This document shows positions 3,578 through 35,503 of a DNA stretch of 64,000 bases, piece after piece. Location of the stretch: the sequence record PV231354.1; one strand, written 5' to 3'. The notes under the pieces are model-generated. The model did not search any database. It saw nothing but the letters and a program-made list of their open reading frames with translations, and had not been told where the DNA came from. How positions within the stretch are numbered: the stretch's first letter is position 1; every line of letters begins with the position of its first letter. Position numbers and translations under genes: made by a program.

Positions 3578-3876
3578 CAGGCGGTGCCCTGGGCGATTTC
3601 GTAGACGATCTTGGAGATGCCGCCCAGGTCCACGGTGAAGCGGTCCTCCGAGCCGTCGAAGATGTACTTCCCGACGCAGCCGATCGGCAGCATCTTGCCG
3701 TTGTCCAGGTAGATGGCGTGCGGGGTGGCCTCGACCACGCCCCGGATCGCGCCCTGCTCCTCGGTTGGCGCCATGTCGACGAAGGTATCCTTCGCGCCCT
3801 TGATGCGGACCACCGCCACGCGCAGACGCGCGCCGGGCTGGTTGAGCTTGGTGATCAGGTCTTGAACGGTCTGCAC
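3577..3876 (-). CDS. hypothetical protein
   Basis: First gene after the promoter at 3934; GAGGAG SD. Confidence 0.75.
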   Translation of the reverse strand: MQTVQDLITKLNQPGARLRVAVVRIKGAKDTFVDMAPTEEQGAIRGVVEATPHAIYLDNGKMLPIGCVGKYIFDGSEDRFTVDLGGISKIVYEIAQGTA

Positions 3877-3879
3877 GGG

Positions 3880-3934
3880 AACTCCTCTATGTCGTCGTCT
3901 CGACCCTTCTAGGTGGAGGTTCCCGTTCTGTCAA
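3880..3934 (-). promoter_or_regulatory. sigma70-type promoter with CGACGACA leader
   Basis: TTGACA(3934-3929)-N17-TAGAAG, then CGACGACATAGAGGAG. Confidence 0.8.
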
Positions 3935-3952
3935 CACACAACCGCCAACGAG

Positions 3953-3987
3953 GCAAAAAGAAACCGCCGACCCGAAGGCCGGCGGTT
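3953..3987 (-). terminator. intrinsic terminator
   Basis: AACCGCCG/CGGCGGTT GC stem around a TTCG loop, followed by TCTTTTT on the minus strand. Confidence 0.8.
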
Positions 3988-4007
3988 GGGAGGTGTGGGC
4001 TCGGGAA

Positions 4008-5867
4008 CTAGACGTCGAGGATGAAGAAGCGCTCGCTGGACGGGCCGTCGACCTCGACGATGAAGCCCGCCTCCAGCAGCGCCTCGATCGCCTTGCCGGT
4101 GTGGTAGAGCGACAGGTCGGACGCTTCGCTGATCCGGGCCAGCGAGAAGCCGACGTTCTGACCAACCTTGAGGTCTTGCAGCGACAGTTCGTTCAGGGTG
4201 GTGATCACCGCCCCGGCCGGGGCCAGTTCATACGCGCCTTCGAAGTCGCGATCCTCCGACAGACGCACGAGGCCTTCCTGCTCGATATTGTCGAGCAGCG
4301 AGGCCAGGAACTCGGGATCGACGAAGCCGACGTGGCTGCGGATTTCGCTCAGGTAGGCCGGGCCGTCGACGTCGACGGCGTTGAGGACCGCCAGCAGGGC
4401 GATGCCCGGCATGACCGCCACGACTTGCTCGGCCTTCTCCTCCTCGGAGATGTCGATCGGCACGCCCCCGCCGTTCGACAGAGGCACGATGGCTTCGTCC
4501 GGATGCAGGAGGATGAAGTCCTTGATCGCCCGCAGCGCCGCCAGGAAATGGTCCTTGGGGATTTCGTCGAGCTTGAAGGTGATGCGATCGTCGATGCCCA
4601 TGGGATAGAGCGCCCGCAGATTGGCGACGATGTCCTCGGGCCACGCGGCGAGCACCGTGTCCCAGAGAACCTTGGGCATCTGGAAGGCCCCGAAAGACAG
4701 GAACTGGTCGGGGGTGGCGGCTTCGACCGCAGCGATGGACTCGTCGATGCTGGCGGGCGTGTAGCCGCCCACGACGCCGTTTTGCGTCGCGTGGAGCACC
4801 TCGGCGGCTTCCTCGGCGCTCAGCCCCGTGATGACCTTTTCCACGCCCTCCTCGGGCTCCTGGAGCGGCTCCAGGGTCTTGAGGCGATCGCTCAGGCCCT
4901 GGATCGACTCGTAGGCGTCGGTCGTGTCGACGGCGAGCTTCAGGGTCAGGCGCTCGGGGCGGGCGCTGAACTCCTCGCCCGTGATGGTGTAGACGCCCTC
5001 GCGCTCCAGGATTTCCAGGTTCAGGAAGCGCCCCGTGTCGTTGAGGGCGCGGAAGCGCGCGTAGAGCATGTCCTGCTCAGTCAGATCGGTGAAGATGCCC
5101 TTGTCGAGCGCGAACAGCAGTTCGCTGCTGGAGAGGGTCTGCTCGCCCATGCCGGAGACCTCCTCGGGCTGGTCCTTCGTGAACCTCAGGCCCGGCCCGG
5201 TGGTCTCGGTTTCTTGAGGGATGATGGGGTCTTCGATCACGGGGGCTTTCTCCTTGAAAACGATGGAGGTCAGTTCGCTCAGCGAGACCGACCAGTTGGT
5301 GTCGACCTGGGCGGCGTAGCGGCCCGACATGGGGTTCCAGGCGACCTTGCCGATCTCGCCGCTGACCATCTTGTCCTCCCAGGCCGAGCGGAACATCACG
5401 TCGGCGCCGCCGAAGTAGTCCGTCAGGTGGCCCGCGAAGGTCTCGATGTCCTCGCGGGACGCCGGGCGCACCTCGCGCAGCGGGTAGGAATGGTGGACGC
5501 CGGGGCGCGCGTCTTCGATCTCGACGAAGATCGGCCCGTGGTCGGTGTGGAAGCGCTCGGTGTAGCCGATCATCTCGCCTTGCGGGGTCATGACCATCAC
5601 CGGCAGGGCCGAGAACTTGTGGTTCAGGCGGTCCACGTAGTCGCTGGGATAGGCGGTGGTGGTGTAGATGAGGTTGTCGCCCCGGCGCACGCCGCTGTAG
5701 TCGACGACGCAGAGCGGCGTGGCCACCGCACCGCTCGGGAAGCGCGGCCGATCAACGAACACTTGCCCGTCCGCCACCGGCGGGGAGACGCCGTGAACGT
5801 AGGGGACCACCTCGCTGTAGGTGGCGATCCAGGCGGGCTTGACCCGGTCAAGGAAGGTTTCGGTCAA
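4008..5867 (-). CDS. large acidic hypothetical protein, possible C-terminal winged helices
   Basis: 619 aa; LARISEASDLSLYHTGKAIEALLEAGFI is HTH-like. Confidence 0.75.
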   Translation of the reverse strand: MTETFLDRVKPAWIATYSEVVPYVHGVSPPVADGQVFVDRPRFPSGAVATPLCVVDYSGVRRGDNLIYTTTAYPSDYVDRLNHKFSALPVMVMTPQGEMIGYTERFHTDHGPIFVEIEDARPGVHHSYPLREVRPASREDIETFAGHLTDYFGGADVMFRSAWEDKMVSGEIGKVAWNPMSGRYAAQVDTNWSVSLSELTSIVFKEKAPVIEDPIIPQETETTGPGLRFTKDQPEEVSGMGEQTLSSSELLFALDKGIFTDLTEQDMLYARFRALNDTGRFLNLEILEREGVYTITGEEFSARPERLTLKLAVDTTDAYESIQGLSDRLKTLEPLQEPEEGVEKVITGLSAEEAAEVLHATQNGVVGGYTPASIDESIAAVEAATPDQFLSFGAFQMPKVLWDTVLAAWPEDIVANLRALYPMGIDDRITFKLDEIPKDHFLAALRAIKDFILLHPDEAIVPLSNGGGVPIDISEEEKAEQVVAVMPGIALLAVLNAVDVDGPAYLSEIRSHVGFVDPEFLASLLDNIEQEGLVRLSEDRDFEGAYELAPAGAVITTLNELSLQDLKVGQNVGFSLARISEASDLSLYHTGKAIEALLEAGFIVEVDGPSSERFFILDV

Positions 5868-5876
5868 GGCGGTCCC

Positions 5877-7145: not shown

Positions 7146-7331
7146 CTACTCCTGTTCTGCTTTGGCGGGACGCCGGCTTCTGGACTGACGCGGGACGAAC
7201 ACCAGGGCGACGGTCGAGCCGCCGGTGTACTTGGTGCGGCGGCTATAGAGCCAACCGCCCTCGATTTCCAGGCGCTCGGTCACCTGACCATCGCCCTCGT
7301 CGATCTTTTCCCATTTCGTCTTCTTGGCCAT
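7146..7331 (-). CDS. small hypothetical protein (GGWLY...FVP type)
   Basis: GAGGAG SD; resembles 14253..14549. Confidence 0.75.
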   Translation of the reverse strand: MAKKTKWEKIDEGDGQVTERLEIEGGWLYSRRTKYTGGSTVALVFVPRQSRSRRPAKAEQE

Positions 7332-7333
7332 GA

Positions 7334-7383
7334 CGCTCCTCGATTTTCGCCGGCACCCTAGAGGAGCGCCGATGTGTTGACAA
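7334..7383 (-). promoter_or_regulatory. leftward sigma70-type promoter
   Basis: TTGTCA(7383-7378)-N17-TAGGGT(7360-7355). Confidence 0.6.
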
Positions 7384-7410: not shown

Positions 7411-7463
7411 TTGACAAGGCGGCGGTGGTCCCTTAGAAGGGCGGCGACGACAACGAAAGGAGG
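7411..7463 (+). promoter_or_regulatory. sigma70-type promoter + CGACGACAACG leader + SD
   Basis: TTGACA-N17-TAGAAG; motif at 7445. Confidence 0.85.
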
Positions 7464-7468
7464 CGCCG

Positions 7469-7768
7469 ATGCGCTACGTTCTGGAGTACATGGACTGCGA
7501 CGACCAGATCGTCCAGGTCGACTTCGAAGCCCCCACCCGCGCCTCGGCGATCGCCAAGGCCAAGCGCCTCTTCGTGAAGGCGGTCGAGGCCAGCGGCCGG
7601 TCGATCTTCACCGGCTACATGTTCGAGGACCACTCGATCACCATGAAGGTGAAGCTGGTCCCGTTCGGCACCCTGAGCCGCTACCTGGGCCTGGGCAAGG
7701 TCACCGCCGCTAACATCTCGTTCGACGACCGCGACGCCAAGATCGCCCGCCAGGACATGGCCGCATGA
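7469..7768 (+). CDS. hypothetical protein
   Basis: AGGAGG SD. Confidence 0.8.
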   Translation: MRYVLEYMDCDDQIVQVDFEAPTRASAIAKAKRLFVKAVEASGRSIFTGYMFEDHSITMKVKLVPFGTLSRYLGLGKVTAANISFDDRDAKIARQDMAA

Positions 7769-7977
7769 TCCGGGTCGAGGACGTTCAGCCCGGCTTCATC
7801 TATCGCGGCGGCAAGAGCGGCGCACTGCGTCAAGTGGTCAGCTACGGCGCCAACGAGAGCTTCGTCTGCTGGGCCAACCCGCACGATCGCCTGCCCTATG
7901 GCGGCTTCCTCAACACCACCTGCACCAGCCGGGCGTCCTTCGCTCGCTGGGCCGACAAGATCGAGGAAGAGGTTTGA
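7765..7977 (+). CDS. hypothetical protein
   Basis: ATGA overlap with upstream gene. Confidence 0.75.
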   Translation: MIRVEDVQPGFIYRGGKSGALRQVVSYGANESFVCWANPHDRLPYGGFLNTTCTSRASFARWADKIEEEV

Positions 7978-8261
7978 TCACCACCTTCCTGCGCTGCACC
8001 CATCGCGACGAGGCCGGCCGCCGGTACTTCGAGTTCCGCGAGCCCGACCTCGTCCAGCGCCTCTATGTCCGCAAGCCGCAGACCGAATGGGAAGAAGGCT
8101 TCCCGATCATCCTGGAGGACTTCTACAACGGCTCCTCTGGCGGCAAGACCCTGTACCGCGCCGGCAAGACCCAGGGCCTGGGGATCAGCGCGTTCTTCCG
8201 CGCCTTCCCCGAGGTCTTCACCCTGATCGTCCTGCCTCAGGAGGTGCTCGATGCCGCGTAA
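7974..8261 (+). CDS. hypothetical protein
   Basis: Overlapping start/stop. Confidence 0.7.
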   Translation: MITTFLRCTHRDEAGRRYFEFREPDLVQRLYVRKPQTEWEEGFPIILEDFYNGSSGGKTLYRAGKTQGLGISAFFRAFPEVFTLIVLPQEVLDAA

Positions 8262-8514
8262 GAAACGCCCCGACCTGCCCGTCACCGTCGCCGACCTCAA
8301 GGCGTACCTGGACAAGTTCCCGGACGACATGAAGGTCGGCATCCGCAGCGGCGGTGGTCGCTTCACCGGCTTCACCGAGGTCGAGGTGTACAACCTCACC
8401 ACCTATGGCTCGGCGAGCGATCGCCTGACCATGGAGACCTCGCGTGGGGCCACCATCTTCAAAGGCTACAAGGGTAAGATTTCCGCGCCCTTCGACGCCC
8501 TCATTTTCGACTAG
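8251..8514 (+). CDS. hypothetical protein
   Basis: GGAGG SD. Confidence 0.75.
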   Translation: MPRKKRPDLPVTVADLKAYLDKFPDDMKVGIRSGGGRFTGFTEVEVYNLTTYGSASDRLTMETSRGATIFKGYKGKISAPFDALIFD

Positions 8515-8522
8515 GAGGGACC

Positions 8523-8777
8523 ATGAGCAACCGCGTTTGGATCGAACTGGAAAAGCCCAAGACGGCCGAAGAAGGCAAGGCGCGCGCCGCGCTGCTCTGC
8601 AAGATGCTCGCCCGCCTGGGCGTCGAGTACGGCCGCTATCCCGCCGTCTTCTGGAGCGAGCGCGACGGCAACTACGCCTTCACCCTCGACGGCGCCGGCA
8701 GCTACGCCGTCTGCGAGGGCGCCGAGCCCGGCCACTGGTACAACCTGGACTCCATCATCGAGGCGTTCGAGGCGTGA
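8523..8777 (+). CDS. hypothetical protein
   Basis: GGAGG SD. Confidence 0.75.
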   Translation: MSNRVWIELEKPKTAEEGKARAALLCKMLARLGVEYGRYPAVFWSERDGNYAFTLDGAGSYAVCEGAEPGHWYNLDSIIEAFEA

Positions 8778-9172
8778 CCCAGGACACCTTCCCGCCGATC
8801 CGCCCCCGCGACGCCAGGGACGAGGAAGTCCATGGCTTCGTCGTCCGCTACGGCTGGTTCTGGAACGTGACCCTGCTCAACGGCACGATCCTGGCCTTCG
8901 ATCCTGACGACGTCGACCCGTGCCGCTACGGCGTCACCGACAAGGACGCCTTCCGCAACCTCGCCGGCCCGGTCGAGACCATCGTCTCCTACGAGTGCGT
9001 CCAGGGCTGGCACGCCAAGGCCAAGCACCTGTCGGGCTGGACCGAGAAGCACGACGACCGGCTCGAAGCCCTGCGCACGGCCTACCGGCGCCTGGAGGAG
9101 CAGCGCGAACGCAACAGCCGGGCGCTCGAAGAGCACGGCGGCATCTTCCAGTTCCTGGAGAAGCAGGACTGA
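8774..9172 (+). CDS. hypothetical protein
   Basis: GTGA overlap; start reassigned. Confidence 0.7.
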   Translation: MTQDTFPPIRPRDARDEEVHGFVVRYGWFWNVTLLNGTILAFDPDDVDPCRYGVTDKDAFRNLAGPVETIVSYECVQGWHAKAKHLSGWTEKHDDRLEALRTAYRRLEEQRERNSRALEEHGGIFQFLEKQD

Positions 9173-9173
9173 C

Positions 9174-9362
9174 GTGACCAACGAGGAGATCACCTTCGCG
9201 GGCCTGATCAAGGCCATGGAGGACGCCCGCCGTGAAGCCCGCGCGGTGGGCGATCTCCTCAAGGCCGCCGAGATCGACGGCTGGTTCAAGGAGCACGCCC
9301 GGATCATCCGGGTGATCCGCGACAAGGCCGAGGCCGAAGAATTCGACAATCCGTTGGCGTGA
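9174..9362 (+). CDS. hypothetical protein
   Basis: ORF in operon. Confidence 0.7.
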   Translation: MTNEEITFAGLIKAMEDARREARAVGDLLKAAEIDGWFKEHARIIRVIRDKAEAEEFDNPLA

Positions 9363-9367
9363 GAGTG

Positions 9368-9420
9368 TTGACAGTCTCGCCGCGCCCGGCTACAAGCCTC
9401 CTCGACGACAACGCAAGGAG
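9368..9420 (+). promoter_or_regulatory. sigma70-type promoter + conserved leader
   Basis: TTGACA-N17-TACAAG; CGACGACAACG at 9403. Confidence 0.8.
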
Positions 9421-9426
9421 CCTGTC

Positions 9427-10590
9427 TTGACCGATTTCCCGATCATCCGCGCCGCCATTGAAGGCCGCCGCGCCGCTGGTTTCGACACCGTCCTGGCCAA
9501 CGCCGACGCCTTCGCTGCCGAGGGCGTGCTGATCAAGGCCGAGTTCGAGGACATCAAGGGCGTCTTCAGCCGCTGCCTCTCCGACGCCTGGGAAGTCGTG
9601 CGCAAGCGCCACTTCTTCATCGACCACGCCCTGCGCTCCAAGGAAGTCGAGGACCTCTTCTGGAGCTTCTCGATCCCCTATCCGCACGTCATGCCGGGCT
9701 TCCTGAAGAAGACCCTGGCGGCCAAGAACATCCCGGCCAACGTCCGCGAAGACCTCGTGGCCCTGTTCAACGAGGGCATCGCCCTCAACGACAAGCTGGT
9801 GGCACTCAAGCCTCTGATCGGCAAGCGCGCGCCCAAGAAGACCAAGGTCGAGATCGAGCGCGAGGGCAAGGAACGCACCTGCCAAATCTGCGGTCGCGGC
9901 ATCCTGGCCGAGGGCGGCATCATCGCCCACCACGGCTACACCCGCCCCTACGAGGGCTGGCAGACCGCCTCCTGCTCTGGCGCCCGCGAGGTTCCGTTCG
10001 AACTGAGCCGCGACGAACTGGGCAAAGAGATCGCCGCCCTGAAGGCGTGGCGCGTGCGCAAGGTGAACGAGCGCGCGGCGATCGAAGCCGAGACCGTCAA
10101 GCTGATCCTGAAGTATCAGGTCTCCGAGCAGGACCCGCGCAAGGCGCAGGGCTTCAAGCTGACCGTCGATCGCCAGATCGAAGTCACCCGCGACACCTTC
10201 GAGGCCCTGAAGGTCTCCACGCCCGAGGCCTTCTCGGGCAAGTACAACCCCCGCAAGGAGGGCAAGTACACCTACGAGGCCCTGACCTTCGACGGCCTGA
10301 AAGAGCAGGCCCTGGGCATGGTCGACATCGAGATCGGCCGCCTGGACAACGACATCCTGCGCCAGCAGGCCCGCTATGACGCCTGGAGCCAGAAGGCGAT
10401 CTTCGCCAAGGGCCGCTATTGGTTCATCGGTGATGAGGTCCAGACCGCCGACGGCGCGGTGGGCAGCATCAAGGGCTTCTACCAGCACTATCCGCCGCAG
10501 CCGGGCGACGTCGCGGGCGGCGTGCGTCTCGGGGCCGAGACCAGCGGTTTCGTCTCCTGGAACGTCGAGAGCCTGGAGCCGGTGGCCTGA
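9427..10590 (+). CDS. hypothetical protein with a possible Zn-binding C-x2-C/H/C motif
   Basis: 387 aa; TCQICGR...HHGY...SC. Confidence 0.8.
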   Translation: MTDFPIIRAAIEGRRAAGFDTVLANADAFAAEGVLIKAEFEDIKGVFSRCLSDAWEVVRKRHFFIDHALRSKEVEDLFWSFSIPYPHVMPGFLKKTLAAKNIPANVREDLVALFNEGIALNDKLVALKPLIGKRAPKKTKVEIEREGKERTCQICGRGILAEGGIIAHHGYTRPYEGWQTASCSGAREVPFELSRDELGKEIAALKAWRVRKVNERAAIEAETVKLILKYQVSEQDPRKAQGFKLTVDRQIEVTRDTFEALKVSTPEAFSGKYNPRKEGKYTYEALTFDGLKEQALGMVDIEIGRLDNDILRQQARYDAWSQKAIFAKGRYWFIGDEVQTADGAVGSIKGFYQHYPPQPGDVAGGVRLGAETSGFVSWNVESLEPVA

Positions 10591-10991
10591 TGCGCTTCGT
10601 CTCCCCAAACCAACCCTACTGCCGCTGCTGCGGCAAGCCGATCAAGAAGTTCACGCTCCGGCACTCGTTTGGCAAGAGCGAGTACAAGGACCATGGCTGG
10701 TCGATCTCGCGCACCGAGAAACCGATGTCCAAGGAGGAACTCCAGCGCGCGGTCAACGGCCGGATCATCTCGTTCACCTGGGACCACGAGACGACCTACG
10801 ACGCCAACTACGAGCCGATCCGCACGAAGACCTTCATCGGCGAGGCCAACGTCTGGGACGGCGAGACCTACGAGGCGCAGTTCTTCTGCACCATGCGGTG
10901 CGCCGCCGCGTTCGGGGAAATGGCCGCCCGTGAATATCCGGGCCTCCACACCCAGACCTACGCTGACGCCATGAAAAAGAGGGAGGGCTAA
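10590..10991 (+). CDS. Cys-rich hypothetical protein
   Basis: CRCCG...FCTMRC. Confidence 0.75.
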   Translation: MRFVSPNQPYCRCCGKPIKKFTLRHSFGKSEYKDHGWSISRTEKPMSKEELQRAVNGRIISFTWDHETTYDANYEPIRTKTFIGEANVWDGETYEAQFFCTMRCAAAFGEMAAREYPGLHTQTYADAMKKREG

Positions 10992-11713
10992 TGTCCGACG
11001 AGATCAGGAAGACCCACGAAGCCTTCGGCGTGATCGGCTACAGCCACACCCAGGGCGACACCGATCTGGTCGGCGTCGACTACGCCCAGGGGCACTACGT
11101 GTCCCTGACGATCAAGACGGCGATCGCCTACGAGGGCGAGACGCACGATCGCTTCCACGGCGACAAGTACATCTGCAAGGTGTCGATGAGCGAGGTCCAG
11201 TGGGCCTCCTTCATCGCCAACCCCAACCGGGGTGACGGCGTGCCCTGCACCTTGCAGTTCTACCGTGACCCGCTGACCGGCGAGCCCAAGCAGCCGAGAT
11301 ACCTGCGCGAGCGCCTGACCCGCATCGACCGCACCCGCGAGGCCGTCACCGCCCGCGCCAAGGGCCTGTCGACCAAGGTCAAGGAAGCCCAGGCCGAACT
11401 CCAGCGGCTGATGGACGGCGGCCCGATCAAGAAGGGCGATCTGAAGGCGCTCAAGGACCTGCTCTACTTCGCCAACCAGGACATGGACATGAACCTGGGC
11501 TACTTCGTCGAGCGGGTCGAGGAGACCATCGACAAGGCGGTGGTCGACGCCAAGGCCCAGGTCGACGCCCACGTCGACTTCGTGGTCCGGGAACTGGGCG
11601 TGCGCGCCCTGGGCTCGCGGCTGCAAGCGGCGATCGACGCGGGCCATGAGCCGGGCGCGGTCGGTCAAGCCCTGCTCGACGCGATAGCCCCACCCCAGGA
11701 GCCGCCGACGTGA
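10991..11713 (+). CDS. hypothetical protein
   Basis: TAATG overlap, SD present. Confidence 0.8.
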   Translation: MSDEIRKTHEAFGVIGYSHTQGDTDLVGVDYAQGHYVSLTIKTAIAYEGETHDRFHGDKYICKVSMSEVQWASFIANPNRGDGVPCTLQFYRDPLTGEPKQPRYLRERLTRIDRTREAVTARAKGLSTKVKEAQAELQRLMDGGPIKKGDLKALKDLLYFANQDMDMNLGYFVERVEETIDKAVVDAKAQVDAHVDFVVRELGVRALGSRLQAAIDAGHEPGAVGQALLDAIAPPQEPPT

Positions 11714-12443: not shown

Positions 12444-12457
12444 TTGGCGTTAGAGTG

Positions 12458-26674: not shown

Positions 26675-26700
26675 AATTTTAATCTGGAGAGGGCCTTAAG

Positions 26701-28737
26701 TTGCTGAATTTCCAACCGTTTAAGACGGCCGTCGCGGCGCAGTTCGCCAAGATGTCCAAGGGCCAACTCTACCGCGTCGAGGTCGACAAGGACCTCCTGT
26801 GGCAGACCTACCTCGCCGCCTTCCCGCCGGGCACGGACCCGATGTTCCGCGCGCGCACCGAGCACAACTGCTCGTGCTGCCGCGCCTTCGTGCGCCAGGG
26901 CGGCGACGTCGTGGCCATCGTCGACAACAAGATCGTCACCCTGTGGGACATCACCGTTCCGGGCGAGCCGGCCTACCAGCAGGTCGCCAACAGCCTCGCG
27001 GGCCTGATCCGCTCGCGGCCGATCGCCGACGTCTTCCTGCACGACCAGAAGTCGATCGGCACCGACCGCAGCGTCGAGTCGCTGCTGGGCGGCGATGACG
27101 TGGTCTGGAACCACTTCTACTGCGACGTGCCCCAGCAGTTCGTCAAGAAGCGCACCGACATCCCCACGGCGCTGCACGGCCCGCGCATGGCGGCCGAGAC
27201 GCTGCTGCGCGCGGTGACCGACATCAGCCGCGAGGCGGTCGAGACCGTGCTCGAACTGGTCGCCCAGAAGTCGGTCTACCGAATCGAGGAGCACAAGGCG
27301 ACCGTCGAGGCCTTCCGGGCGATGCAGAACAGCTTCGCCGGCAAGACGGGCCTGGACGCGACGCTGCACGCCTGGACCACGGCCACCAAGGGCGAGGTCT
27401 GGGGCTCGGTGATCGGCATCAAGAACACCGTGATCGGCTCGCTGCTGCTCGACCTGTCGGGCGACATGGAGATCGAGGACGCGGTCAAGAAGTACGAGAC
27501 CAAGGTCGCGCCGCAGAACTACAAGCGCACCTCGACGATCGCCACCAAGCGCCAGATCGAGGCCGCCAAGAAGACGCTGGAGGACCTGGGTCTGACCTCG
27601 GCCCTGGAGCGCCGCTATGCCGTCCTGACGGACGTGTCGATCAACGACGTCCTGTTCGCCGATCGCTCGGCCAAGGCGGCGCTGAGCGCGGACGTGTTCT
27701 CGGAGATGGCGGCCGAGGTGGGCGAGAAGACCAAGTCGTTCGACAAGGTCGAGGAGGTCCCGATCGACCGCTTCCTGAGCGACATCCTGCCCAAGGTCAC
27801 GTCGATCGAGGCCCTGGTCGAGAACCGTCTGGCGGGCAACTTCGTCAGCCTGATCGCGCCCAAGAACCCGACGGCCGGCAACCTCTTCAAGTGGGGCAAC
27901 AACTTCTCCTGGTCCTATGCCGGCGAGGTCGCGGACTCCATCAAGCAGCGCGTCAAGGCCGCTGGCGGTAACGTCTCGGGCGACCTCTGCTGCCGCCTGG
28001 GCTGGTTCAACCACGACGACCTCGACTTCCACATGTACGAGCCGGGCGGTGGTCACATCTTCTTCCGCGAGAAGGTCTCCGAGCGCACGCGTGGTCAACT
28101 CGACGTCGACATGAACGCCGGGCGCGGCACCACGCGCTCGCCGGTCGAGAACATCTTCTATGGCGACCGCAAGCGGATGAAGGAGGGCGTCTACGAACTG
28201 AAGGTCCACCAGTTCGATAACCGCGACGCCTCGCGCGATCCGGGCTTCGAGGTCGAGATCGACTACCTGGGCGCGGTGACCAAGTTCGCCTACGCCAAGG
28301 CCCTGCGCTACCAGGAATACGTCACGGTCGCCAAGTTCGAGTACAGCCACGCCGGCGGGATCAAAATCCTGTCGTCGCTGCCGTCGTCCTCGGCGAGCAA
28401 GGACGTCTGGGGCGTGAAGACCGAGACCTTCCGCAAGGTCAACGTCGTCATGCTGTCGCCCAACTTCTGGGACGGCGAGCCGGGCGTCGGCAACAAGCAC
28501 TTCTTCTTCATGCTGGAGGGCGGCATCAACGAGGACGGCGCGCGCGGCTTCTACAACGAGTTCCTCAAGGACTCGCTGAGCCCGCACCGCCGCGTCTTCG
28601 AGATGCTGGGCTCCAAGCTGAAGCCCGCGCCGGCCGCCGAGCAACTCTCGGGCCTGGGCTTCTCGTCGTCCAAGCCTGACACCCTGACCGTCAAGGTCTC
28701 GGGCGCCTTCACCCGCGTTCTGAAAATCAAGTTCTAG
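26701..28737 (+). CDS. large conserved phage protein with YfaP/DUF2135-like segment
   Basis: EHNCSCCRAF; DLDFHMYEP...GQLDVDMNAG...PVENIFY. Confidence 0.75.
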   Translation: MLNFQPFKTAVAAQFAKMSKGQLYRVEVDKDLLWQTYLAAFPPGTDPMFRARTEHNCSCCRAFVRQGGDVVAIVDNKIVTLWDITVPGEPAYQQVANSLAGLIRSRPIADVFLHDQKSIGTDRSVESLLGGDDVVWNHFYCDVPQQFVKKRTDIPTALHGPRMAAETLLRAVTDISREAVETVLELVAQKSVYRIEEHKATVEAFRAMQNSFAGKTGLDATLHAWTTATKGEVWGSVIGIKNTVIGSLLLDLSGDMEIEDAVKKYETKVAPQNYKRTSTIATKRQIEAAKKTLEDLGLTSALERRYAVLTDVSINDVLFADRSAKAALSADVFSEMAAEVGEKTKSFDKVEEVPIDRFLSDILPKVTSIEALVENRLAGNFVSLIAPKNPTAGNLFKWGNNFSWSYAGEVADSIKQRVKAAGGNVSGDLCCRLGWFNHDDLDFHMYEPGGGHIFFREKVSERTRGQLDVDMNAGRGTTRSPVENIFYGDRKRMKEGVYELKVHQFDNRDASRDPGFEVEIDYLGAVTKFAYAKALRYQEYVTVAKFEYSHAGGIKILSSLPSSSASKDVWGVKTETFRKVNVVMLSPNFWDGEPGVGNKHFFFMLEGGINEDGARGFYNEFLKDSLSPHRRVFEMLGSKLKPAPAAEQLSGLGFSSSKPDTLTVKVSGAFTRVLKIKF

Positions 28738-28749
28738 GAAAGGAAGACC

Positions 28750-29166
28750 ATGGAAAACATCTTCGAAGTCGCCTCGCGCGAAAAGTACCGCTACGAGTCC
28801 GCCAAGGGCCTCATCTCGACCGAGGACCTGTGGGACCTGCCGCTGACCAGCGACACGGGCAAGGCCAACCTGAACGACATCGCCGTGGCCCTGTTCAAGC
28901 AGGTCAAGGACCTGGACGACATCTCGTTCGTCAAGCCCAAGACGCTCGACAAGACCGTCGCCCCGCGCCTGGAGATCGTCAAGGCGGTGATCGCCTACCG
29001 CCAGGACGAGAACCGCAAGAAGCTGGAAGCCAACACCAAGCGCGAGACCGCCCGCATCCTGCAAGAAGCCATCAGCGCCAAGCGCTCCGAGAAGATCGCC
29101 GGCACCCCGCTGGAAGAACTCGAAGCGCAACTGGCCGCGCTGAAGGCCGAGGGCGTCGAGGCCTAA
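28750..29166 (+). CDS. conserved phage hypothetical protein (coiled coil)
   Basis: GLISTEDLWDLPLT. Confidence 0.8.
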   Translation: MENIFEVASREKYRYESAKGLISTEDLWDLPLTSDTGKANLNDIAVALFKQVKDLDDISFVKPKTLDKTVAPRLEIVKAVIAYRQDENRKKLEANTKRETARILQEAISAKRSEKIAGTPLEELEAQLAALKAEGVEA

Positions 29167-29173
29167 TCGGCTG

Positions 29174-29230
29174 TTGACAACACTCTAACGCCAACATAGA
29201 AGGGCCTCCGACGACAACGCCGGAGGCCCT
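29174..29230 (+). promoter_or_regulatory. sigma70-type promoter + conserved leader hairpin
   Basis: TTGACA-N17-TAGAAG; AGGGCCTCCG/CGGAGGCCCT 10-bp stem. Confidence 0.85.
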
Positions 29231-29234
29231 TTTC

Positions 29235-29573
29235 ATGCAAGCCGAGAACTACACGCAGAACCTGAGCGACTGGTCCCAGTATCGCAACAATGGTCGCGGG
29301 GGCTGCGGCCTCAAGCGTGCCGAGGGCACGATCTCCAAGCGCGCCTATGAGCGCCTGATCCGCGAGGCCAAGCGCGACTTCCTGGCCGGCTTCGACATCG
29401 ACTGGTCCAAGTACGGCGAGCCGACCGTCACCTTCTACGACATGCTGACCGCCCAGATCGAGTGGCCTAACCTGAAATCGGGTCAGTTGATCACGCTGAC
29501 CCAAATCTGGTTCGAGCGAAAGACCGGCGAAATTCTCCAGGCCGGCTCCAACCACGGGAGCCTGACCCTGTGA
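29235..29573 (+). CDS. hypothetical protein
   Basis: ATG after the SD. Confidence 0.75.
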   Translation: MQAENYTQNLSDWSQYRNNGRGGCGLKRAEGTISKRAYERLIREAKRDFLAGFDIDWSKYGEPTVTFYDMLTAQIEWPNLKSGQLITLTQIWFERKTGEILQAGSNHGSLTL

Positions 29574-30046
29574 GCGACACCGCCAAGACCCCCAAGACCT
29601 TCACCGCCGACGAGATCGCCACCGCCATGGCGGCCCAGAACCGCGCCTTCCGCCGCATGGAAGCGCGGGCGGTCGAGAATGAGCGCGAGGCCGGCGAGCG
29701 CCGCCAGCAAATCGCCCTGGACGACCTGCGCCGCGAGATGATGGCCGGCGCCCGTGCCAACGTGGAGCGTGGCGTGTACACGCTGTCGACCCTGGAGTGC
29801 GACGAGTACCGCCACACCAATGTCGTGCTGGCCGAGGTCCGCACCCGCGTCTTCGCCGCCCGCCTGTCGTTCTCGGACGAGGACGCGGCCTGGACGATCG
29901 AGGCGATCATCCGCCGCTACCCCGGCGGCCCGGCCCGCGTCCTGGAGAAGGAAGTCCTGACCCAGCAGGCGGCCTGGGACTTCTTCAACGAGGTCGTCGA
30001 GCGCTTCTACAACACCGCCGGCTTCATCTGCCGCGTCGACTACTAG
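29570..30046 (+). CDS. hypothetical protein
   Basis: GTGA overlap. Confidence 0.75.
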   Translation: MSDTAKTPKTFTADEIATAMAAQNRAFRRMEARAVENEREAGERRQQIALDDLRREMMAGARANVERGVYTLSTLECDEYRHTNVVLAEVRTRVFAARLSFSDEDAAWTIEAIIRRYPGGPARVLEKEVLTQQAAWDFFNEVVERFYNTAGFICRVDY

Positions 30047-30059
30047 GGAGGACCCCGAC

Positions 30060-30524
30060 ATGATGGCTCACCTGATCCTGAACACCGCCCAGCAGCGCAC
30101 CATGAACGAGGTGTCCGACGCGCTGGCCTACCTGATCCGCAACGACGGCGACCCCAACAGCGCCGGCGAGGGCTACTACAACATGCTCCACCTGGACCGG
30201 ATCGCCGACGACGTCACGGGCCTGTTCGCCCCCATCGGCGAGCGTCCCCTGGCCAGGACGCTGTTCGACGTCCAGGCGACCTTCCGGGGCTACTGGAAGG
30301 GCCAATACCCCAAGGTCGAGACCCTGAAGACCTGGGCCGCCGAGTTCCGGCCGCACTACAAGAACCTGGAGCAGGTCCGCTACATCAACCGCCCGCCGGT
30401 CGAGCCCAAGACGGTGCGCGAGGAGGTCATGGCCAAGCTCTCGAAGAGCTACACCCAGGCCGAGATCAGCGTCTTCCTGGGGAACCTCGAACAGCACGGC
30501 TTCGCGGTGATCAAGGCCGGCTAA
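30060..30524 (+). CDS. hypothetical protein
   Basis: GGAGG SD. Confidence 0.75.
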   Translation: MMAHLILNTAQQRTMNEVSDALAYLIRNDGDPNSAGEGYYNMLHLDRIADDVTGLFAPIGERPLARTLFDVQATFRGYWKGQYPKVETLKTWAAEFRPHYKNLEQVRYINRPPVEPKTVREEVMAKLSKSYTQAEISVFLGNLEQHGFAVIKAG

Positions 30525-30544
30525 ACTTTGTTGGCGCGAGAGTG

Positions 30545-30598
30545 TTGACAGCAGCGTCCTGACGCCATAGAACCCTCTCGACGACAACGAAGGAGGCC
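30545..30598 (+). promoter_or_regulatory. sigma70-type promoter + conserved leader
   Basis: TTGACA-N17-TAGAAC; motif at 30579. Confidence 0.85.
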
Positions 30599-30601
30599 CC
30601 G

Positions 30602-30988
30602 ATGGGCGCGCAACTGGAAATCAAGGAAGTCTTCGCCGCCTCGCAGGACGCCGTCTATTCCTGGCGTGGCGAGGAAGGTGACGAGTACCGCGTGATGAGC
30701 CTCGTCCACGTCCAGACGATGGACGGCCGCTGGTTCCTGATGCCGGCCATGCGCCCCTACTCGGACGTCGAGCGCTTCGACTTCGAGATGGCCTGCGAGG
30801 GCGAGCCCCTGTTCGGCATGGCGACCGTCTACTGGGACGCCGAAGCCTTCGCCGCCAAGGTCCGCGCGCGCGGCGTGATCCGCCCGGAGTTCTGGGTCGA
30901 GTATCAGCCCGACACCCGCACGACCGAGCAGCGCTTCGAGGACATGTGGATCGAAGAGCAGTACGACCGCATGGGGTACGCCGCATGA
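30602..30988 (+). CDS. hypothetical protein
   Basis: ATG after the SD. Confidence 0.8.
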   Translation: MGAQLEIKEVFAASQDAVYSWRGEEGDEYRVMSLVHVQTMDGRWFLMPAMRPYSDVERFDFEMACEGEPLFGMATVYWDAEAFAAKVRARGVIRPEFWVEYQPDTRTTEQRFEDMWIEEQYDRMGYAA

Positions 30989-31227
30989 GCGCCCGCCAGA
31001 AGCAGACCGTGATCGACAAGCTGGAGAAGACCTACAAGTCGATCCAGGCCCAGCAGGCGCGCGGCATCAACTGGGGCACCAAGGCGTGCCTCGAACTGGT
31101 CGACCGCTACAACGACCTGAAGGCCGAAGCCACCCGCGTCGGCGGCCATAGCAACCCCGAGTGGAAGGCCTACTGCGAGCGCCACGGCTCCAGCGTCTCC
31201 CACGACGGCTACGATCTGTGGGCGTGA
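30985..31227 (+). CDS. hypothetical protein
   Basis: ATGA overlap. Confidence 0.7.
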   Translation: MSARQKQTVIDKLEKTYKSIQAQQARGINWGTKACLELVDRYNDLKAEATRVGGHSNPEWKAYCERHGSSVSHDGYDLWA

Positions 31228-31229
31228 TC

Positions 31230-31472
31230 ATGTCCCGCACCGTCAAAGTCGAGCGGGGCACGACGACCTACTACGTCACCATCGACGAGGCCGGCGAGGT
31301 CATCGCGATCTCGGGCATGGCGGTGGTCGGCAAGGTCCCGCGCCACAAGGGCGGCAAGCGCCGCGTGCCCTGGAGCGGCGCGCACTGGCACGCCGGCTAC
31401 AAGACTCCGATCCCGCAACAACTGCGTCCCATCGCCGAGGACGCCATCCGACAGAAGGAGACCAACCCTTGA
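31230..31472 (+). CDS. hypothetical protein
   Basis: ORF in operon. Confidence 0.7.
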   Translation: MSRTVKVERGTTTYYVTIDEAGEVIAISGMAVVGKVPRHKGGKRRVPWSGAHWHAGYKTPIPQQLRPIAEDAIRQKETNP

Positions 31473-31864
31473 GCCTGCAACAGATGCACCCATTCCTGAA
31501 CCCGGCCCTACCCTACAGCGAGGAGGAGCAAAAACTCCTCGCGGGCTTCAAGGCCGGCGGTGGTCCGGCCGAGGATATCCCCCTGGTCGTCGCTGTTCCC
31601 CGGTTGAGGGCCAAGCTGCTCGAAACGGTGACCTACGACCACGAGGTCCTCGAAGACAACAATGCCGCGCCGCGTGACTTCTGGCACGTCCGCGCCCGCC
31701 TGGGCGGCGACGAGGGCCTGACCACCGACTGGATGAAGTACGGCGAACTGGGCGATCACAAGAAGCGCCTGCCCGACGACATTATCCGCCGCGTCGAGGC
31801 GCAGGTCTTCACGGACCTCTTCTACGCGCTGCTGCAAGGCCTGGGCCTGGAGGACTTCTATTGA
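31469..31864 (+). CDS. hypothetical protein
   Basis: AAGGAG SD. Confidence 0.7.
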   Translation: MSLQQMHPFLNPALPYSEEEQKLLAGFKAGGGPAEDIPLVVAVPRLRAKLLETVTYDHEVLEDNNAAPRDFWHVRARLGGDEGLTTDWMKYGELGDHKKRLPDDIIRRVEAQVFTDLFYALLQGLGLEDFY

Positions 31865-32208
31865 CCGCCCTGATCTCCAAGGAGGAGGCGTTGCAACTGA
31901 TCGACGACCTCCAGACCACGTTCTCGACCCTGCGGATGCAGGTCGGGCCGGCGAACGACGACATATCCCAGGAGCGCCTCAAGCGCCTGCTGGCCTATGT
32001 CGAGCAGGACCCCGACGTCCCGCCGATCGAGGCCTACGCCAAGCGGCCCATCAGCCCGCAGTTCCGGGCCGAGATGGTCAAGCACGCTGAGCGCTGCGAC
32101 GGCGAGGTCGACCTCATGAAGGGCGGCCCCTACACCCGCACGACCTGGGTCCACAGGCGTTCGGCCGACATCCTGCGCAAGCTCGTCACCTTCCTGGACA
32201 AGGACTGA
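31861..32208 (+). CDS. hypothetical protein
   Basis: Overlapping start/stop. Confidence 0.7.
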   Translation: MTALISKEEALQLIDDLQTTFSTLRMQVGPANDDISQERLKRLLAYVEQDPDVPPIEAYAKRPISPQFRAEMVKHAERCDGEVDLMKGGPYTRTTWVHRRSADILRKLVTFLDKD

Positions 32209-32210
32209 TC

Positions 32211-32666
32211 ATGCCCGGAACCCTTCTCTGCCTCAATCCCGACGGCGCCAACTTCCAGGCCCAGGCCGTGCTCGCGGTGGTCCGCGACATGCTGGGCGAG
32301 GACTTCGAGCCCTCCTGGAGCACCGACCTGGGCGAATACCTCGCCGAGCCGCGTCTGGCCCGCTTCGATAACAACCGCGTCGCCGGCTACGTGATCTGGA
32401 TGCCCGACAGCCGGGCGTGCGCCTGGATGGGTCCCGAAGGCTGGCGCCAGATCAACATCACCTTCTACCAGCACGGCGTCAGCGACCAGATCGTCGTCAA
32501 CGGCTGGCGCAAAGCCTATCGTGAAGACCTGCCGCCCACTCGCCACGACATGCCCGACGTCGAGGAGATGCACCGCCGGCAAATCTTCGAGCAGCACGAG
32601 ATCGTGCCGGCCGCCGAGTACATCATCCACCTGCTGACCGAGTTCTGGGAGGAAGGCAATACGTGA
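32211..32666 (+). CDS. hypothetical protein
   Basis: ORF in operon. Confidence 0.75.
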   Translation: MPGTLLCLNPDGANFQAQAVLAVVRDMLGEDFEPSWSTDLGEYLAEPRLARFDNNRVAGYVIWMPDSRACAWMGPEGWRQINITFYQHGVSDQIVVNGWRKAYREDLPPTRHDMPDVEEMHRRQIFEQHEIVPAAEYIIHLLTEFWEEGNT

Positions 32667-32998
32667 CCGACTATGACGCCTGCCTGACCAACTGGGTCAT
32701 CTGCCTGACGCCGATCCCGGTCATCGTCCGGGGCGACGCCGTGCCCGAGCCGGGCGTGGTGCTCGTCGGCGAGATCATGCAGGACCGCAAGAAGCGCTGG
32801 CCGGACGGGCGTCTCGTCCACACCTCGGTGCTTCTGAGCGCGCGGGAGTTGATCAAGCCGGGCGAGGTCGTGCGCACCCTGCGCAGCCACTACCTCCTGG
32901 GCCGACCCGCCGAGGAGATCACCCTGCGCCATAGCCTGGGCGCGATGTTCGCCCAGGTCGTCATTCAACCGCTTGACAACACTCTCGCGCCAACCTAG
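32663..32998 (+). CDS. hypothetical protein
   Basis: GTGA overlap. Confidence 0.7.
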   Translation: MTDYDACLTNWVICLTPIPVIVRGDAVPEPGVVLVGEIMQDRKKRWPDGRLVHTSVLLSARELIKPGEVVRTLRSHYLLGRPAEEITLRHSLGAMFAQVVIQPLDNTLAPT

Positions 32999-33060
32999 AA
33001 GGGTCGTCGACGACAACGCCTGTCCGAAATTTGTACACAGATTTCGGACATAATAGGAGG
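32973..33060 (+). promoter_or_regulatory. sigma70-type promoter + leader with an extra hairpin
   Basis: TTGACA-N17-TAGAAG; motif at 33008; TGTCCGAAAT/ATTTCGGACA inverted repeat. Confidence 0.85.
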
Positions 33061-33065
33061 TCCAG

Positions 33066-33497
33066 ATGTCCTACACCGAAGCCCACATGGAAGCGCTGGT
33101 CGCCTTCCACCAGAACGAGATGGACGTCGGCGACGGCGCCTGGGGGCGCTACGTCAAGACGCTGGAGCAGCGCACCGGGATCGAAGACCTGGACGGCGAC
33201 AACTCCGAAGAGGCCCGCGCCTACTTCTGCGACATGGGCTACTCGCTCGACGACACCTTCGACATGTTCCAGAAGGGCGTGTCGCTGGCCGACGCCGAGA
33301 CCGCGATCCTGCGTTCGTGCTATGAGGCCGCCACCCGCGCGGCGCTCGCCGGCGTCAAGGGCCTGACCGAGGCCCAGGAGCGCGCCCAGGCGGCCGGCAA
33401 GACCGACTATGTCGCGCAACTTCAGAAGCAGATCGACAGCCTGATCGACGGCGAGAGCGCCGAGGCCTCGGCGGTCGAACGCGCGGCGGGGTGCTGA
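33066..33497 (+). CDS. hypothetical protein
   Basis: AGGAGG SD. Confidence 0.8.
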   Translation: MSYTEAHMEALVAFHQNEMDVGDGAWGRYVKTLEQRTGIEDLDGDNSEEARAYFCDMGYSLDDTFDMFQKGVSLADAETAILRSCYEAATRAALAGVKGLTEAQERAQAAGKTDYVAQLQKQIDSLIDGESAEASAVERAAGC

Positions 33498-33499
33498 CC

Positions 33500-33718
33500 A
33501 TGAGCTTCCACCGCAGCCCCCTTCCTGGCCCGCCGGAGCAGGCCGACGAGCGCTACAAGTTCATCGACATCGATGGCCGGCGCTACAAGGTCTACCGCTC
33601 GGGTCACGTCTCGGTCCTGATCCAGGGCACGGGCAAGCGGGCCGGCTACACCCGCTCGCTGACCCACAACAGCATCATCGCCGCGCGCGTGCGCTTCGCC
33701 TCGGGGTGGTTCGCATGA
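33500..33718 (+). CDS. hypothetical protein
   Basis: ORF in operon. Confidence 0.65.
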   Translation: MSFHRSPLPGPPEQADERYKFIDIDGRRYKVYRSGHVSVLIQGTGKRAGYTRSLTHNSIIAARVRFASGWFA

Positions 33719-34107
33719 GCAAGCCGTCGATCGCGGTGGTGGGGTTCGTCTCCTCCACGCCCAACTTCTTCGAGATCGTCGACCTCAAGGTCGTCGACGA
33801 CAGCCGCCGGCCCGGCGACGGGCGCATGTTCGCCCGCGACGCCGACACGGTGAACCCGTGCCCGCCCTGGGTCGAGTTCCAGATCGTGCTCGGCGTCTTC
33901 GACACCTACGAGCAGGCGGCGGCGGCGCGCGAGAAGTCCCGCGCCGACTACAAGGCCGCCGGCGCCGAGGTCGAGAAGACCAACGGCGAACTGATGCGCG
34001 CGACCCGCGCCTATGAAGCCGCCATCCTCGCCCACAACGAGGCCAAGACCGAGCAGCGGCGCGCCAGCCGGCAGGCCTTCCTCGGCACCCCCACCGACTA
34101 CCGCTAG
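33715..34107 (+). CDS. hypothetical protein, paralogue of 34793..35161
   Basis: GF...PNFFEIVDL; coiled-coil C-terminus. Confidence 0.75.
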   Translation: MSKPSIAVVGFVSSTPNFFEIVDLKVVDDSRRPGDGRMFARDADTVNPCPPWVEFQIVLGVFDTYEQAAAAREKSRADYKAAGAEVEKTNGELMRATRAYEAAILAHNEAKTEQRRASRQAFLGTPTDYR

Positions 34108-34115
34108 GAGGTCCC

Positions 34116-34319
34116 ATGACCAAGTACGTCATCCCCATTCAGGTCGACTTCCTGATCGCGCCCGCCAGGGGCGATGTGATGCAAACCCTGCTGTCGCGGA
34201 TCGAGGCGATCCTGGACGAAGAACTCAGCATCATGCTGAGCGACGCGCCCGACCGGGTCATCGCCCTGAGCCCCGTCAAGGGTCTGCACCAGCGGACCAC
34301 GACGACGGAGGAGACCTGA
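34116..34319 (+). CDS. hypothetical protein
   Basis: GGAGG SD. Confidence 0.7.
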   Translation: MTKYVIPIQVDFLIAPARGDVMQTLLSRIEAILDEELSIMLSDAPDRVIALSPVKGLHQRTTTTEET

Positions 34320-34320
34320 C

Positions 34321-34812
34321 ATGGCCCAGGAATACCAGACCTACACCGTCAAGGGCTCCTGGCCCTTCCCGACCGACATGCTGCGCTACGACGACGCCAA
34401 GCCGGCGACCGTCTTTGCCAGCGAGACGATCAACCGCCTGTCGGGCGACTACGCCCCGTCGCGCGAGAGCATCCGCGACGAGGTCGAAATCAGGCTGATC
34501 CGGATCAAGCGCGGCCTGCCGGCGATCGACCGCTGGGAGTCGTTTGGCTGGAAGGTCGTCAACGGCGACGAGGACACCCAGTACGCGATCGCGGTGCGCA
34601 ACCCGCCGCCGCTGGAACCCACGCCCTACGAGAAGCTGCGCGCGGCGGTCAAGGACGTGATCGCCGAACTCGACTACACGCCCAAGTACGTCTACGCCCG
34701 CGAGGACGACCTGGGCAAGCCCCTACCACCGCGCCTGATGTGCGCGCTGAACGAACTCACCAACACCTACAACGAAACTCCGGAGGCCCGACATGGCAAT
34801 GACCACCCCTGA
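34321..34812 (+). CDS. hypothetical protein
   Basis: GAGGAG SD. Confidence 0.75.
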   Translation: MAQEYQTYTVKGSWPFPTDMLRYDDAKPATVFASETINRLSGDYAPSRESIRDEVEIRLIRIKRGLPAIDRWESFGWKVVNGDEDTQYAIAVRNPPPLEPTPYEKLRAAVKDVIAELDYTPKYVYAREDDLGKPLPPRLMCALNELTNTYNETPEARHGNDHP

Positions 34813-35161
34813 CGGGCGCTACGCCATCGCCGGCTTCACCGGCTGGTCGCCCCAGCACTTCAAGGTCGTCGACCTGGACACCAAGTCCGTCAACGTCAGC
34901 GGCTGGGAAGACGAGGAGCAGGACTTCGCCCTGACGCTGGACGGCGAGCGCTTCTACTACGACGTCATCAAGGCGCGCTTCGCGACCGCCGAGGACGCCG
35001 TGGGCAACCTCACCGCCGCCCAGGAAGCCTACGCGCTCCACGACAAGGAGGTCGAGGCCTTGAGCGAGGAACTGGAAACCCTCAAGCGCAAGCTCGAACT
35101 GGCCGTCTCGGCGCGGGGCCGGGCCTACCGCAAGGCCATGAAGGGCGTCGACCTCGGATGA
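34793..35161 (+). CDS. hypothetical protein, paralogue of 33715..34107
   Basis: GF...PQHFKVVDL. Confidence 0.75.
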   Translation: MAMTTPDGRYAIAGFTGWSPQHFKVVDLDTKSVNVSGWEDEEQDFALTLDGERFYYDVIKARFATAEDAVGNLTAAQEAYALHDKEVEALSEELETLKRKLELAVSARGRAYRKAMKGVDLG

Positions 35162-35433
35162 TCGTCTTCCTGCTCTGCGCCATCCCCTACGTCCTGGTCG
35201 GCGGCTGCATCTACGCGGCCCTGATCGACCGCTACGTCACGCGCGAGACCACCGGAAGCTCGGACGATGAAGTGGGCGCCCGGCTGATCTACGCGATCTT
35301 CTGGATGATCGCCATCCCCCTCCACCTCCTCGCAATCCTGTTCGACATCCTGCGGCATCGCGCCTTCCGTCAGCGCCATAAGCTCCGGACCGGCCACGAC
35401 ATCGGCCCCTGGACCTATACCGGCTGGCTCTGA
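35158..35433 (+). CDS. small 2-TM membrane protein
   Basis: Two hydrophobic helices. Confidence 0.7.
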   Translation: MIVFLLCAIPYVLVGGCIYAALIDRYVTRETTGSSDDEVGARLIYAIFWMIAIPLHLLAILFDILRHRAFRQRHKLRTGHDIGPWTYTGWL

Positions 35434-35450
35434 GCCTTGGCTGCGATGTG

Positions 35451-35503
35451 TTGACAAGGCTGCGCGGCCTCCTGTAGAAGACCCTCGACGACAACAGGAG
35501 GCC
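35451..35503 (+). promoter_or_regulatory. sigma70-type promoter + conserved leader
   Basis: TTGACA-N18-TAGAAG; inverted repeat GGCCTCCTGT/ACAGGAGGCC. Confidence 0.85.

Follow-up and report, generated by a model that had tools for sequence, protein, structure and literature searches.

The early region of phage RBC8 and its promoter-leader modules

The stretch of DNA analyzed here, a window of 64,000 nucleotides (nt) from sequence record PV231354.1, corresponds to the last 64 kb of the genome of the Caulobacter phage RBC8 (159271-223270), and our subject is a set of inverted repeats in it that connect promoters with the ribosome binding sites (RBSs) of the genes directly behind them. The window is the early region of a giant phiCbK-like Caulobacter phage. 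An 8-kb piece of it (12000-20000) showed 100% identity with phages RBC8, RBC11, and BL64, 96.7% with CcrRogue, 86% with CcrBL10 (BL10 in the following), and ~80% with Magneto, Karma, Swift, and phiCbK. In the annotation of the record, small hypothetical genes stand in rows that run leftward as far as 7331 and rightward starting at 7469. These early genes are arranged as short units, each with a promoter-leader module at its head, and the modules occupy intergenic gaps of 28-120 bp. A Pfam search of the first genes of the units revealed no common functional theme, and an Rfam search of the window matched no family. The phages related to phiCbK are a model group whose transcription signals, to our knowledge, have hardly been described so far. 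The modules and stems reported here are not described in the phiCbK genome paper or in those papers on phiCbK and CtrA that were searched, and a literature search found no start-site study on phiCbK.

In order, a module consists of an optional TTGGCG-N6-TG, the hexamer TTGACA, 17 bp, TAGAAG/C or TATAAC, 5-7 bp, the leader CGACGACAAC, 0-3 nt, GGAGG, 5-9 nt, and a start codon. RBC8 carries 22 copies between 116.7 and 202.7 kb, 15 of them within the window, and every copy is co-oriented with its genes. Both GTGTTGACA and CGACGACAAC were strongly over-represented in the window. The two hexamers of the module fit the consensus of Caulobacter RpoD (sigma-73), TTGaCgS / GCtANAWC (PMC8144410), with proper spacing and in the same direction as the genes. 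A generic E. coli-type promoter scan picked up no module. This is because that scan demands T as the last base of the -10 box, which is absent from Caulobacter -10 boxes.

Stems between the promoter and the ribosome binding site

The initial annotation of the window had listed four inverted repeats, each with the Shine-Dalgarno (SD) sequence in its downstream arm, and all four were found at exactly the coordinates that it gave (those of modules H, K, and S and of the leftward promoter in Table 1). In these four repeats, the upstream arm lies within the 3' end of the spacer between the -35 and -10 hexamers, and the downstream arm lies over the SD. At module K, the 11-bp repeat GGGGCCTCCTC (12470-80) / GAGGAGGCCCC (12503-13) is part of a stem that exceeds the length first noted, reaching over the SD, the AUG, and two further bases.

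A second class of stem, which was absent from the initial annotation, was observed at the modules with -35 hexamers at 16235, 24362, and 29174, and at two RBC8 modules outside the window, 116759 and 136779(-), to which we refer as modules A and B. In this class, the 5' arm takes in the final bases of the -10 box and the discriminator, with the conserved leader as the loop. The 3' arm is the SD region in both classes and often extends into the start codon: the stems of modules K, S, N, P, L, H, A, and B all include the SD, and those of K, A, and P extend to the start codon.

Table 1. Positions of the modules, stems, and neighboring signals in the window (positions are those of the window; p and z are from the shuffle test described in the text).
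Feature	Position	Strand	Elements	Stem or repeat	Shuffle test
Module H	3874..3939	- (leftward)	-35 3934-3929, GTG 3876	bulged, 3926-3915 / 3887-3875	p 0.001
Canonical intrinsic terminator	3962..3987	-	just upstream of module H	11-bp stem then T run	
Leftward promoter at divergent point	7329..7383	-	TTGTCA 7383-78, TAGGGT 7360-55, ATG 7331 (gene start); no CGACGACAAC leader	8 bp, CGCTCCTC 7334-41 / GAGGAGCG 7361-68	
Module K	12458..12517	+	-35 12458-63, -10 TATATC 12481-86, leader CGACGACAAC 12493-502, ATG 12515	17 bp, 12464-80 / 12503-19; dG -32.2	z -7.6
Module L	16235..16295	+	-10 16258-63, leader 16270-79, GTG 16293	bulged, about 16260-71 / 16279-91	p 0.003
Module N	24362..24421	+	-10 TAGAAC 24385-90, leader 24397-406, ATG 24419	9 bp, CCCTCCTCG 24390-98 / CGAGGAGGG 24406-14; 5' arm between -10 and leader	p 0.0015
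Module P	29174..29237	+	-10 29197-202, leader 29209-18, ATG 29235	13 bp, 29198-210 / 29221-33; GC core GGGCCTCCG / CGGAGGCCC, then TTTTC	z -6.4
Module S	35451..35509	+	-35 35451-56, -10 TAGAAG 35475-80, leader 35486-95, ATG 35507	GGCCTCCTGT 35466-75 / ACAGGAGGCC 35494-503	p 0.0025
Modules with background-level pairing	7411..43539	+	-35 at 7411, 9368, 17722, 25803, 30545, 36829, 43476		
Module 32973	within 7411..43539	+	long leader, no nearby SD		pairing not above background

Pairing compared with chance

The shuffle test was carried out on 17 RBC8 modules. The segment from the -35 hexamer to the leader was paired with the segment from the end of the leader to the start codon, and the upstream segment was then shuffled. 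Pairing reached p<=0.006 in 8 of the 17 (A, B, and the window modules at 3934(-), 12458, 16235, 24362, 29174, and 35451), with a Fisher combined p of 3.6e-12. The arms of a module also paired better with each other than with arms swapped between modules, both in RBC8 (permutation p = 0.00125) and in its relatives BL10 (0.023), Magneto (0.0016), phiCbK (0.0037), and Swift (0.023). The SD region had a perfect complement of at least 7 bp within the preceding 30 nt at 5 of 15 promoter-preceded genes versus 1 of the 87 other annotated genes of the window. The mean duplex energy did not differ significantly between promoter-preceded and other genes (p = 0.29); GC-rich coding sequence readily makes imperfect duplexes, and the enrichment is confined to long perfect stems. 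CcrColossus (Colossus in the following), a phage of another genus whose -10 context differs and whose leader is GACGATCA, likewise had an excess of pairing (own versus swapped arms, p = 0.0013; combined p = 2.7e-5), found in a minority of its modules. Excess pairing is real in about 40% of the modules and missing in the rest.

Conservation and covariation in related phages

For a full comparison, we used 100 kb each of RBC8, BL10, Magneto, phiCbK, and Swift, which represent two genera, and added module sequences from RBC57, BL57, Ccr10, Karma, and Ccr5. Six stems were strong in all five fully compared phages, namely those of the orthologues of modules A, B, K, N, P, and S. Of the four repeats in the initial annotation, two (12470/12503 and 35466/35494) are kept in all five phages. 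The other two are peculiar to RBC8: 3875/3915, and 7334/7361, which BL10 has lost and of which the Shapiroviruses have 6 bp, one of them G.U.

Module K gave the clearest case, and its pairs were counted in ten phages by a script anchored on the CTCCTC/GAGGAG core, since MAFFT misaligned the 3' arm of this module. At the first pair outward from the core, RBC8 and BL10 have C-G, and six Shapiroviruses have A-T. The second is G-C, with G.T in phiCbK, Karma, Ccr5, and RBC57, and A-T in Magneto, Swift, BL57, and Ccr10. Between RBC8 and BL10, the 5' arm has two outer differences (T.G versus C-G and A-T versus G.T), and pairing is intact in both phages. When the arms were exchanged between lineages, 5 to 15 kcal/mol were lost, depending on the direction of the exchange. 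The protein encoded downstream of module K is ~64% identical between the lineages, and the stem has nonetheless been retained. As these changes are compensatory or preserve pairing through G.U, they indicate that it is as RNA, rather than as DNA, that the arms pair. At module S, both arms are identical in all five phages while adjacent bases of the spacer and discriminator vary, and the stem is longer in the Shapiroviruses (-30.2).

Outside these phages, the homologue of the gene at 12515 in the Brevundimonas phage Bajun was found to have no promoter module. A pattern scan of viral contigs yielded mostly chance matches and known isolates. Wastewater sequencing runs matched the window in a low share only, and the contigs of relatives over 30400-36300 were short and of low depth.

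Predicted folding of long and short RNAs

To represent an RNA started at the module's own promoter, the start was placed at the G of CGACGACAAC, 6-7 nt past the -10 box; the long RNA carried an additional 150 nt of upstream sequence. The predicted unpaired fraction of the region from the SD to the AUG had a mean of 0.50 on short RNAs and 0.30 on long ones, and on the long RNAs it was 0.00 at 12458, 0.05 at 16235, 0.09 at 29174, 0.16 at 35451, 0.17 at 3934(-), and 0.29 at 24362. Long leaders folded more stably than their shuffled versions (z -5.1 at 12458, -3.0 at 29174, -2.5 at 24362, and -1.7 at 35451), with z values for the matching short leaders of -0.5 to +1.2 (-0.5 at 12458; 0.06 at 24362). 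The proposal that the SD could be hidden on long RNAs and exposed on promoter-started RNAs is thus borne out by these predictions, in which SD and AUG are closed on the former and open on the latter. The upstream arm would likewise lie 5' of the transcription start, as predicted from a very good host RpoD-type promoter.

Two further features of the locus bear on long RNAs. A scan for terminator-like sites on the + strand between the units, from 7.4 to 44 kb, found none, and read-through from one unit into the next is therefore plausible. According to the annotation coordinates, the stop codons of the upstream genes end at least 19 nt ahead of the 5' arms, and a terminating ribosome should therefore leave the stem unmelted.

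A proposed model for the hiding of ribosome binding sites on read-through RNA

At the head of each unit stands a host RpoD-type promoter fused to the CGACGACAAC leader, a strong SD, and a start codon, and in ~40% of the modules the segment immediately upstream of the predicted start complements that from SD to AUG. The 5' arm of such a module is located in the -35/-10 spacer, at its 3' end, or in the -10 box and discriminator. We propose that an RNA begun at the module's own promoter would exclude the 5' arm and have an open ribosome site. A read-through RNA from the upstream unit would contain both arms, and these would fold into a stem of 9-17 bp that covers the SD and AUG, with poor translation of the unit's first gene from that RNA as the result. 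At modules P and B, where UUUU follows the stem, read-through transcription would probably be terminated as well. The 3' arm is always on the SD or AUG and the position of the 5' arm within the promoter is variable, which speaks for pairing in RNA rather than for a fixed site in DNA. On balance, we lean slightly towards such read-through-specific hiding of the RBS by hairpins embedded in promoters, in which the place where transcription begins, the occurrence of read-through RNA, and the consequence for translation are inferred.

The precedent from phage T4 that the initial annotation had invoked is real: the RBSs of T4 genes e (lysozyme), soc, 49, and I-TevI are sequestered on early read-through RNA and open on RNA from late promoters (PMC3014915). 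As in T4, the helix covers the SD and/or AUG and the arrangement is kept in related phages, and its 5' strand is predicted to lie at the nearby promoter or farther upstream, so that transcripts started there would be without it. T4 uses the device to separate time classes (early read-through and late promoter), and does so at few genes, all of them special. In RBC8, both promoters, upstream and nearby, are of the same host-sigma class, and the putative device recurs, at about 8 of 20 units, and is labile in evolution. Mobile elements reportedly provide a second parallel, in the fold-back inhibition of IS10 that Davis, Simons, and Kleckner are said to have described in 1985 and in the read-through structure of IS50 attributed to Schulz and Reznikoff in 1991, both of which reportedly protect against outside transcription. 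In these elements, sequence upstream of the element's own start is said to pair with the RBS of the transposase gene, and transcripts entering from outside are said to be translationally silent. There too, the RBS is reportedly folded away only on RNA begun upstream of the nearby promoter; theirs are single mobile-element genes facing host promoters, whereas the stems in RBC8 are repeated between the phage's own units.

Several observations count against the proposed mechanism, and in particular against its generality. The initial annotation had inferred that translation of the first gene of a unit is tied to that unit's own promoter, a proposal that the anatomy, the RNA type of pairing, and the predicted folds support in part. 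It does not extend to first genes in general, since ~60% of the modules have no stem. In the shuffle test, 9 of 17 modules were at background level, and one stemless module, 9368, sits downstream of a unit that has no terminator. Even the conserved stems have exceptions, with a mismatch in the K stem in 2 of 10 phages (BL57 and Ccr10) and a broken covarying outer pair of module N in Karma and BL57. At other modules the stems turn over. The L stem is strong in RBC8 only (RBC8 -19.6; BL10 -12.3; Shapiroviruses -13.6), as is the H stem (RBC8 -19.5; BL10 -12.0), which is degenerate in CcrBL10; the stem at 17722 (module M) is strong in BL10 only, and the orthologue of 30545 (module Q) has a 10-bp stem in BL57 only. 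To judge by these comparisons, this turnover weakens the claim of generality. Some complementarity is also supplied by the module consensus itself, which has CCTC before the leader and GAGG after it. Two of the four repeats first listed are poor examples: 7334/7361 stands at a divergent start, so that no co-directional read-through is expected there, and 3875/3915 follows the canonical terminator. Finally, with a single class of promoter throughout, the separation of early from late expression that underlies the T4 device is not directly transferable, and what the phage would gain from silencing the translation of read-through RNA is not obvious. A role in dosage or insulation, perhaps reinforced by Rho acting on an untranslated first cistron, is speculation.

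Alternative explanations

The hairpins may instead serve the unit upstream, as terminators, pause sites, or stabilizers of its 3' end, and cover the SD as a side effect of packing in a tight gap of 55-120 bp that must accommodate a promoter and an RBS as well. No other + strand terminators lie between the units, and module P fits this explanation: its GC core leads into TTTT, the identical structure in the phiCbK record (183509-183536) bears the label of a predicted rho-independent terminator, and its paralogue, module B, shares leader and tail. Among the module stems, a GC-rich stem followed directly by a U tract was found only at these two sites, 29198-29233 and RBC8 136779(-). Both resemble intrinsic terminators in this, and differ from them in that the 5' arm overlaps the -10 box and discriminator, so that transcripts of the embedded promoter would escape, and in that the 3' arm is the RBS. 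These two hairpins probably do stop read-through transcription, to judge by their sequence, with the RNA of the embedded promoter starting inside the hairpin and escaping. The remaining stems are unlike intrinsic terminators, as there is no U tract in K, S, N, A, L, or H, and no terminator is annotated in the phiCbK record at K, S, N, A, or B. Moreover, the stems extend exactly over the SD and AUG, and where the phage has a canonical terminator (3962-3987) it is that which is used. We consider it unlikely that service to the upstream unit accounts for the stems.

Pairing could also be a by-product of composition or of the module consensus, without selection, with the pyrimidine-rich CCTC discriminator and the ribosome site GGAGGCCCC pairing accidentally. 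The consensus alone yields CCTCG/CGAGG, and the shared 3' context GGAGGCCC lets a single 5' arm suit many modules; the modules at background level and the turnover of stems among close relatives would also be expected. Against this stand the shuffle, permutation, and non-promoter gene controls, the compensatory and wobble changes in module K, and Colossus, which shows the same excess despite a different consensus. Such an origin therefore appears improbable to us.

It is more doubtful still that transcription starts upstream of the 5' arms, in which case every mRNA would carry the stem as a constitutive repressor of translation that a factor, or a cut in the CGACGACAAC loop, would open. The extreme conservation of the loop and leader would suit a protein or RNase site. 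The combination TTGACA-17-TAGAAG, however, comes close to an ideal RpoD promoter and is correctly spaced in all copies; it puts +1 at the start of the conserved leader, past most or all of each 5' arm, and no alternative promoter motif lies upstream besides the TTGGCG element.

The idea that the repeats act in DNA, as the site of a dimeric regulator or as a cruciform controlling promoter opening, draws on arms that flank or overlap the -10 box and on CtrA-type promoters at 56.8-63.2 kb that also have covarying inverted repeats around the -10 with a 3' arm off the SD, and it appears the least probable of all, as arm sequence, spacing (loops of 7-22 nt), and position relative to the -10 vary among the modules, several variants pair solely via G.T, a mismatch in DNA, and the 3' arm follows the SD and AUG rather than the promoter.

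Additional features of the modules and of the window

The leader CGACGACAAC (12493-12502, and in every other module) hardly varies among the modules, of which each phage in the two genera has at least 20, and is replaced in Colossus by GACGATCA/GACGAACA. It is probably the initial transcribed sequence, for which promoter escape, a ribosome standby site, and an RNase or protein site are candidate roles. Most modules also have a ~20-bp element, TTGGCG-N6-TGTTGACA, upstream of and including the -35 hexamer, with forward copies at 12444-12463, 30531-30550, and 9354-9373. In other modules (16235-16256, 24362-24383, 29174-29195, 32973-32994, and one more RBC8 module), the reverse complement TTGACAACACTCTCGCGCCAAC occupies the spacer instead. 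Both orientations are thus present around the -35, and the element may mark two subclasses of promoter as the binding site of a factor. In Colossus, promoters of two types occur at 140-260 kb, TTGACG/A-N10-GTTTCTTTACA and GAGAGTTGACAGNCGGC...CTAA, and a GACGATCA-type leader follows both.

From the -10 box to the ATG, module P is the same as the leftward module B, which lies 52 kb away, with one base different. The gene behind the module P cassette differs between RBC8/BL10, Magneto/phiCbK, and Swift. In Ccr5 and BL57, it is a different gene whose promoter has been replaced by a similar cassette. The cassettes appear to be moved or recombined at the conserved leader.

Module 32973 has a leader of ~55 nt (33009-33065) that contains a perfect 10-bp inverted repeat, TGTCCGAAAT-N10-ATTTCGGACA (33022-33051), directly ahead of the AGGAGG of the gene at 33066, which could be an operator or a 5' stem-loop. 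The visible part of its 5' arm is kept in BL10 and the Shapiroviruses, and a wastewater contig varies in the loop with neither arm changed. Two copies of ACAACC-N6-GGTTGT, each with a T-rich center, lie at 43417-43470, in the 120-bp gap ahead of the module at 43476, and are candidates for either a weak pair of terminators or a binding site. At 56825-63230, CtrA-box promoters (TTAA-N7-TTAA) carry the covarying repeats mentioned above, among them GACTTGACC/GGTCAAGTC (56840-56868) and GACCCGGCC/GGCCGGGTC (~58090-58115), whose 3' arm is ahead of the SD, a different use of a straddled -10 box.

Implications for phiCbK-like phages

The mechanism proposed here is already known from other systems; in the phiCbK-like phages, it is a recurring but optional part of the early promoter cassette. 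A wider view, which we offer as tentative and rather doubtful, is that the early region has insulators built into its promoters, in the form of hairpins whose 5' arm lies within the promoter. RNA arriving from upstream would be silenced at the next first cistron and, at two sites, terminated, and the module's own RNA would start inside the hairpin and escape it. Such an insulator would be modular and self-bypassing, and would have been reinvented repeatedly, in various units and lineages, including Colossus with its different promoter consensus. If the proposed hiding of RBSs is confirmed, it would be the first case known to us in which a single genome employs the trick of T4 and IS10 many times over, as a fixed component of its early promoter cassettes. 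For the engineering of Caulobacter, such cassettes would be small, transferable insulators that combine promoter, leader, and RBS within ~60 bp. The mechanism would also explain how the dosage of first genes is tied to their own promoters in the tightly packed, terminator-free units of these phages.

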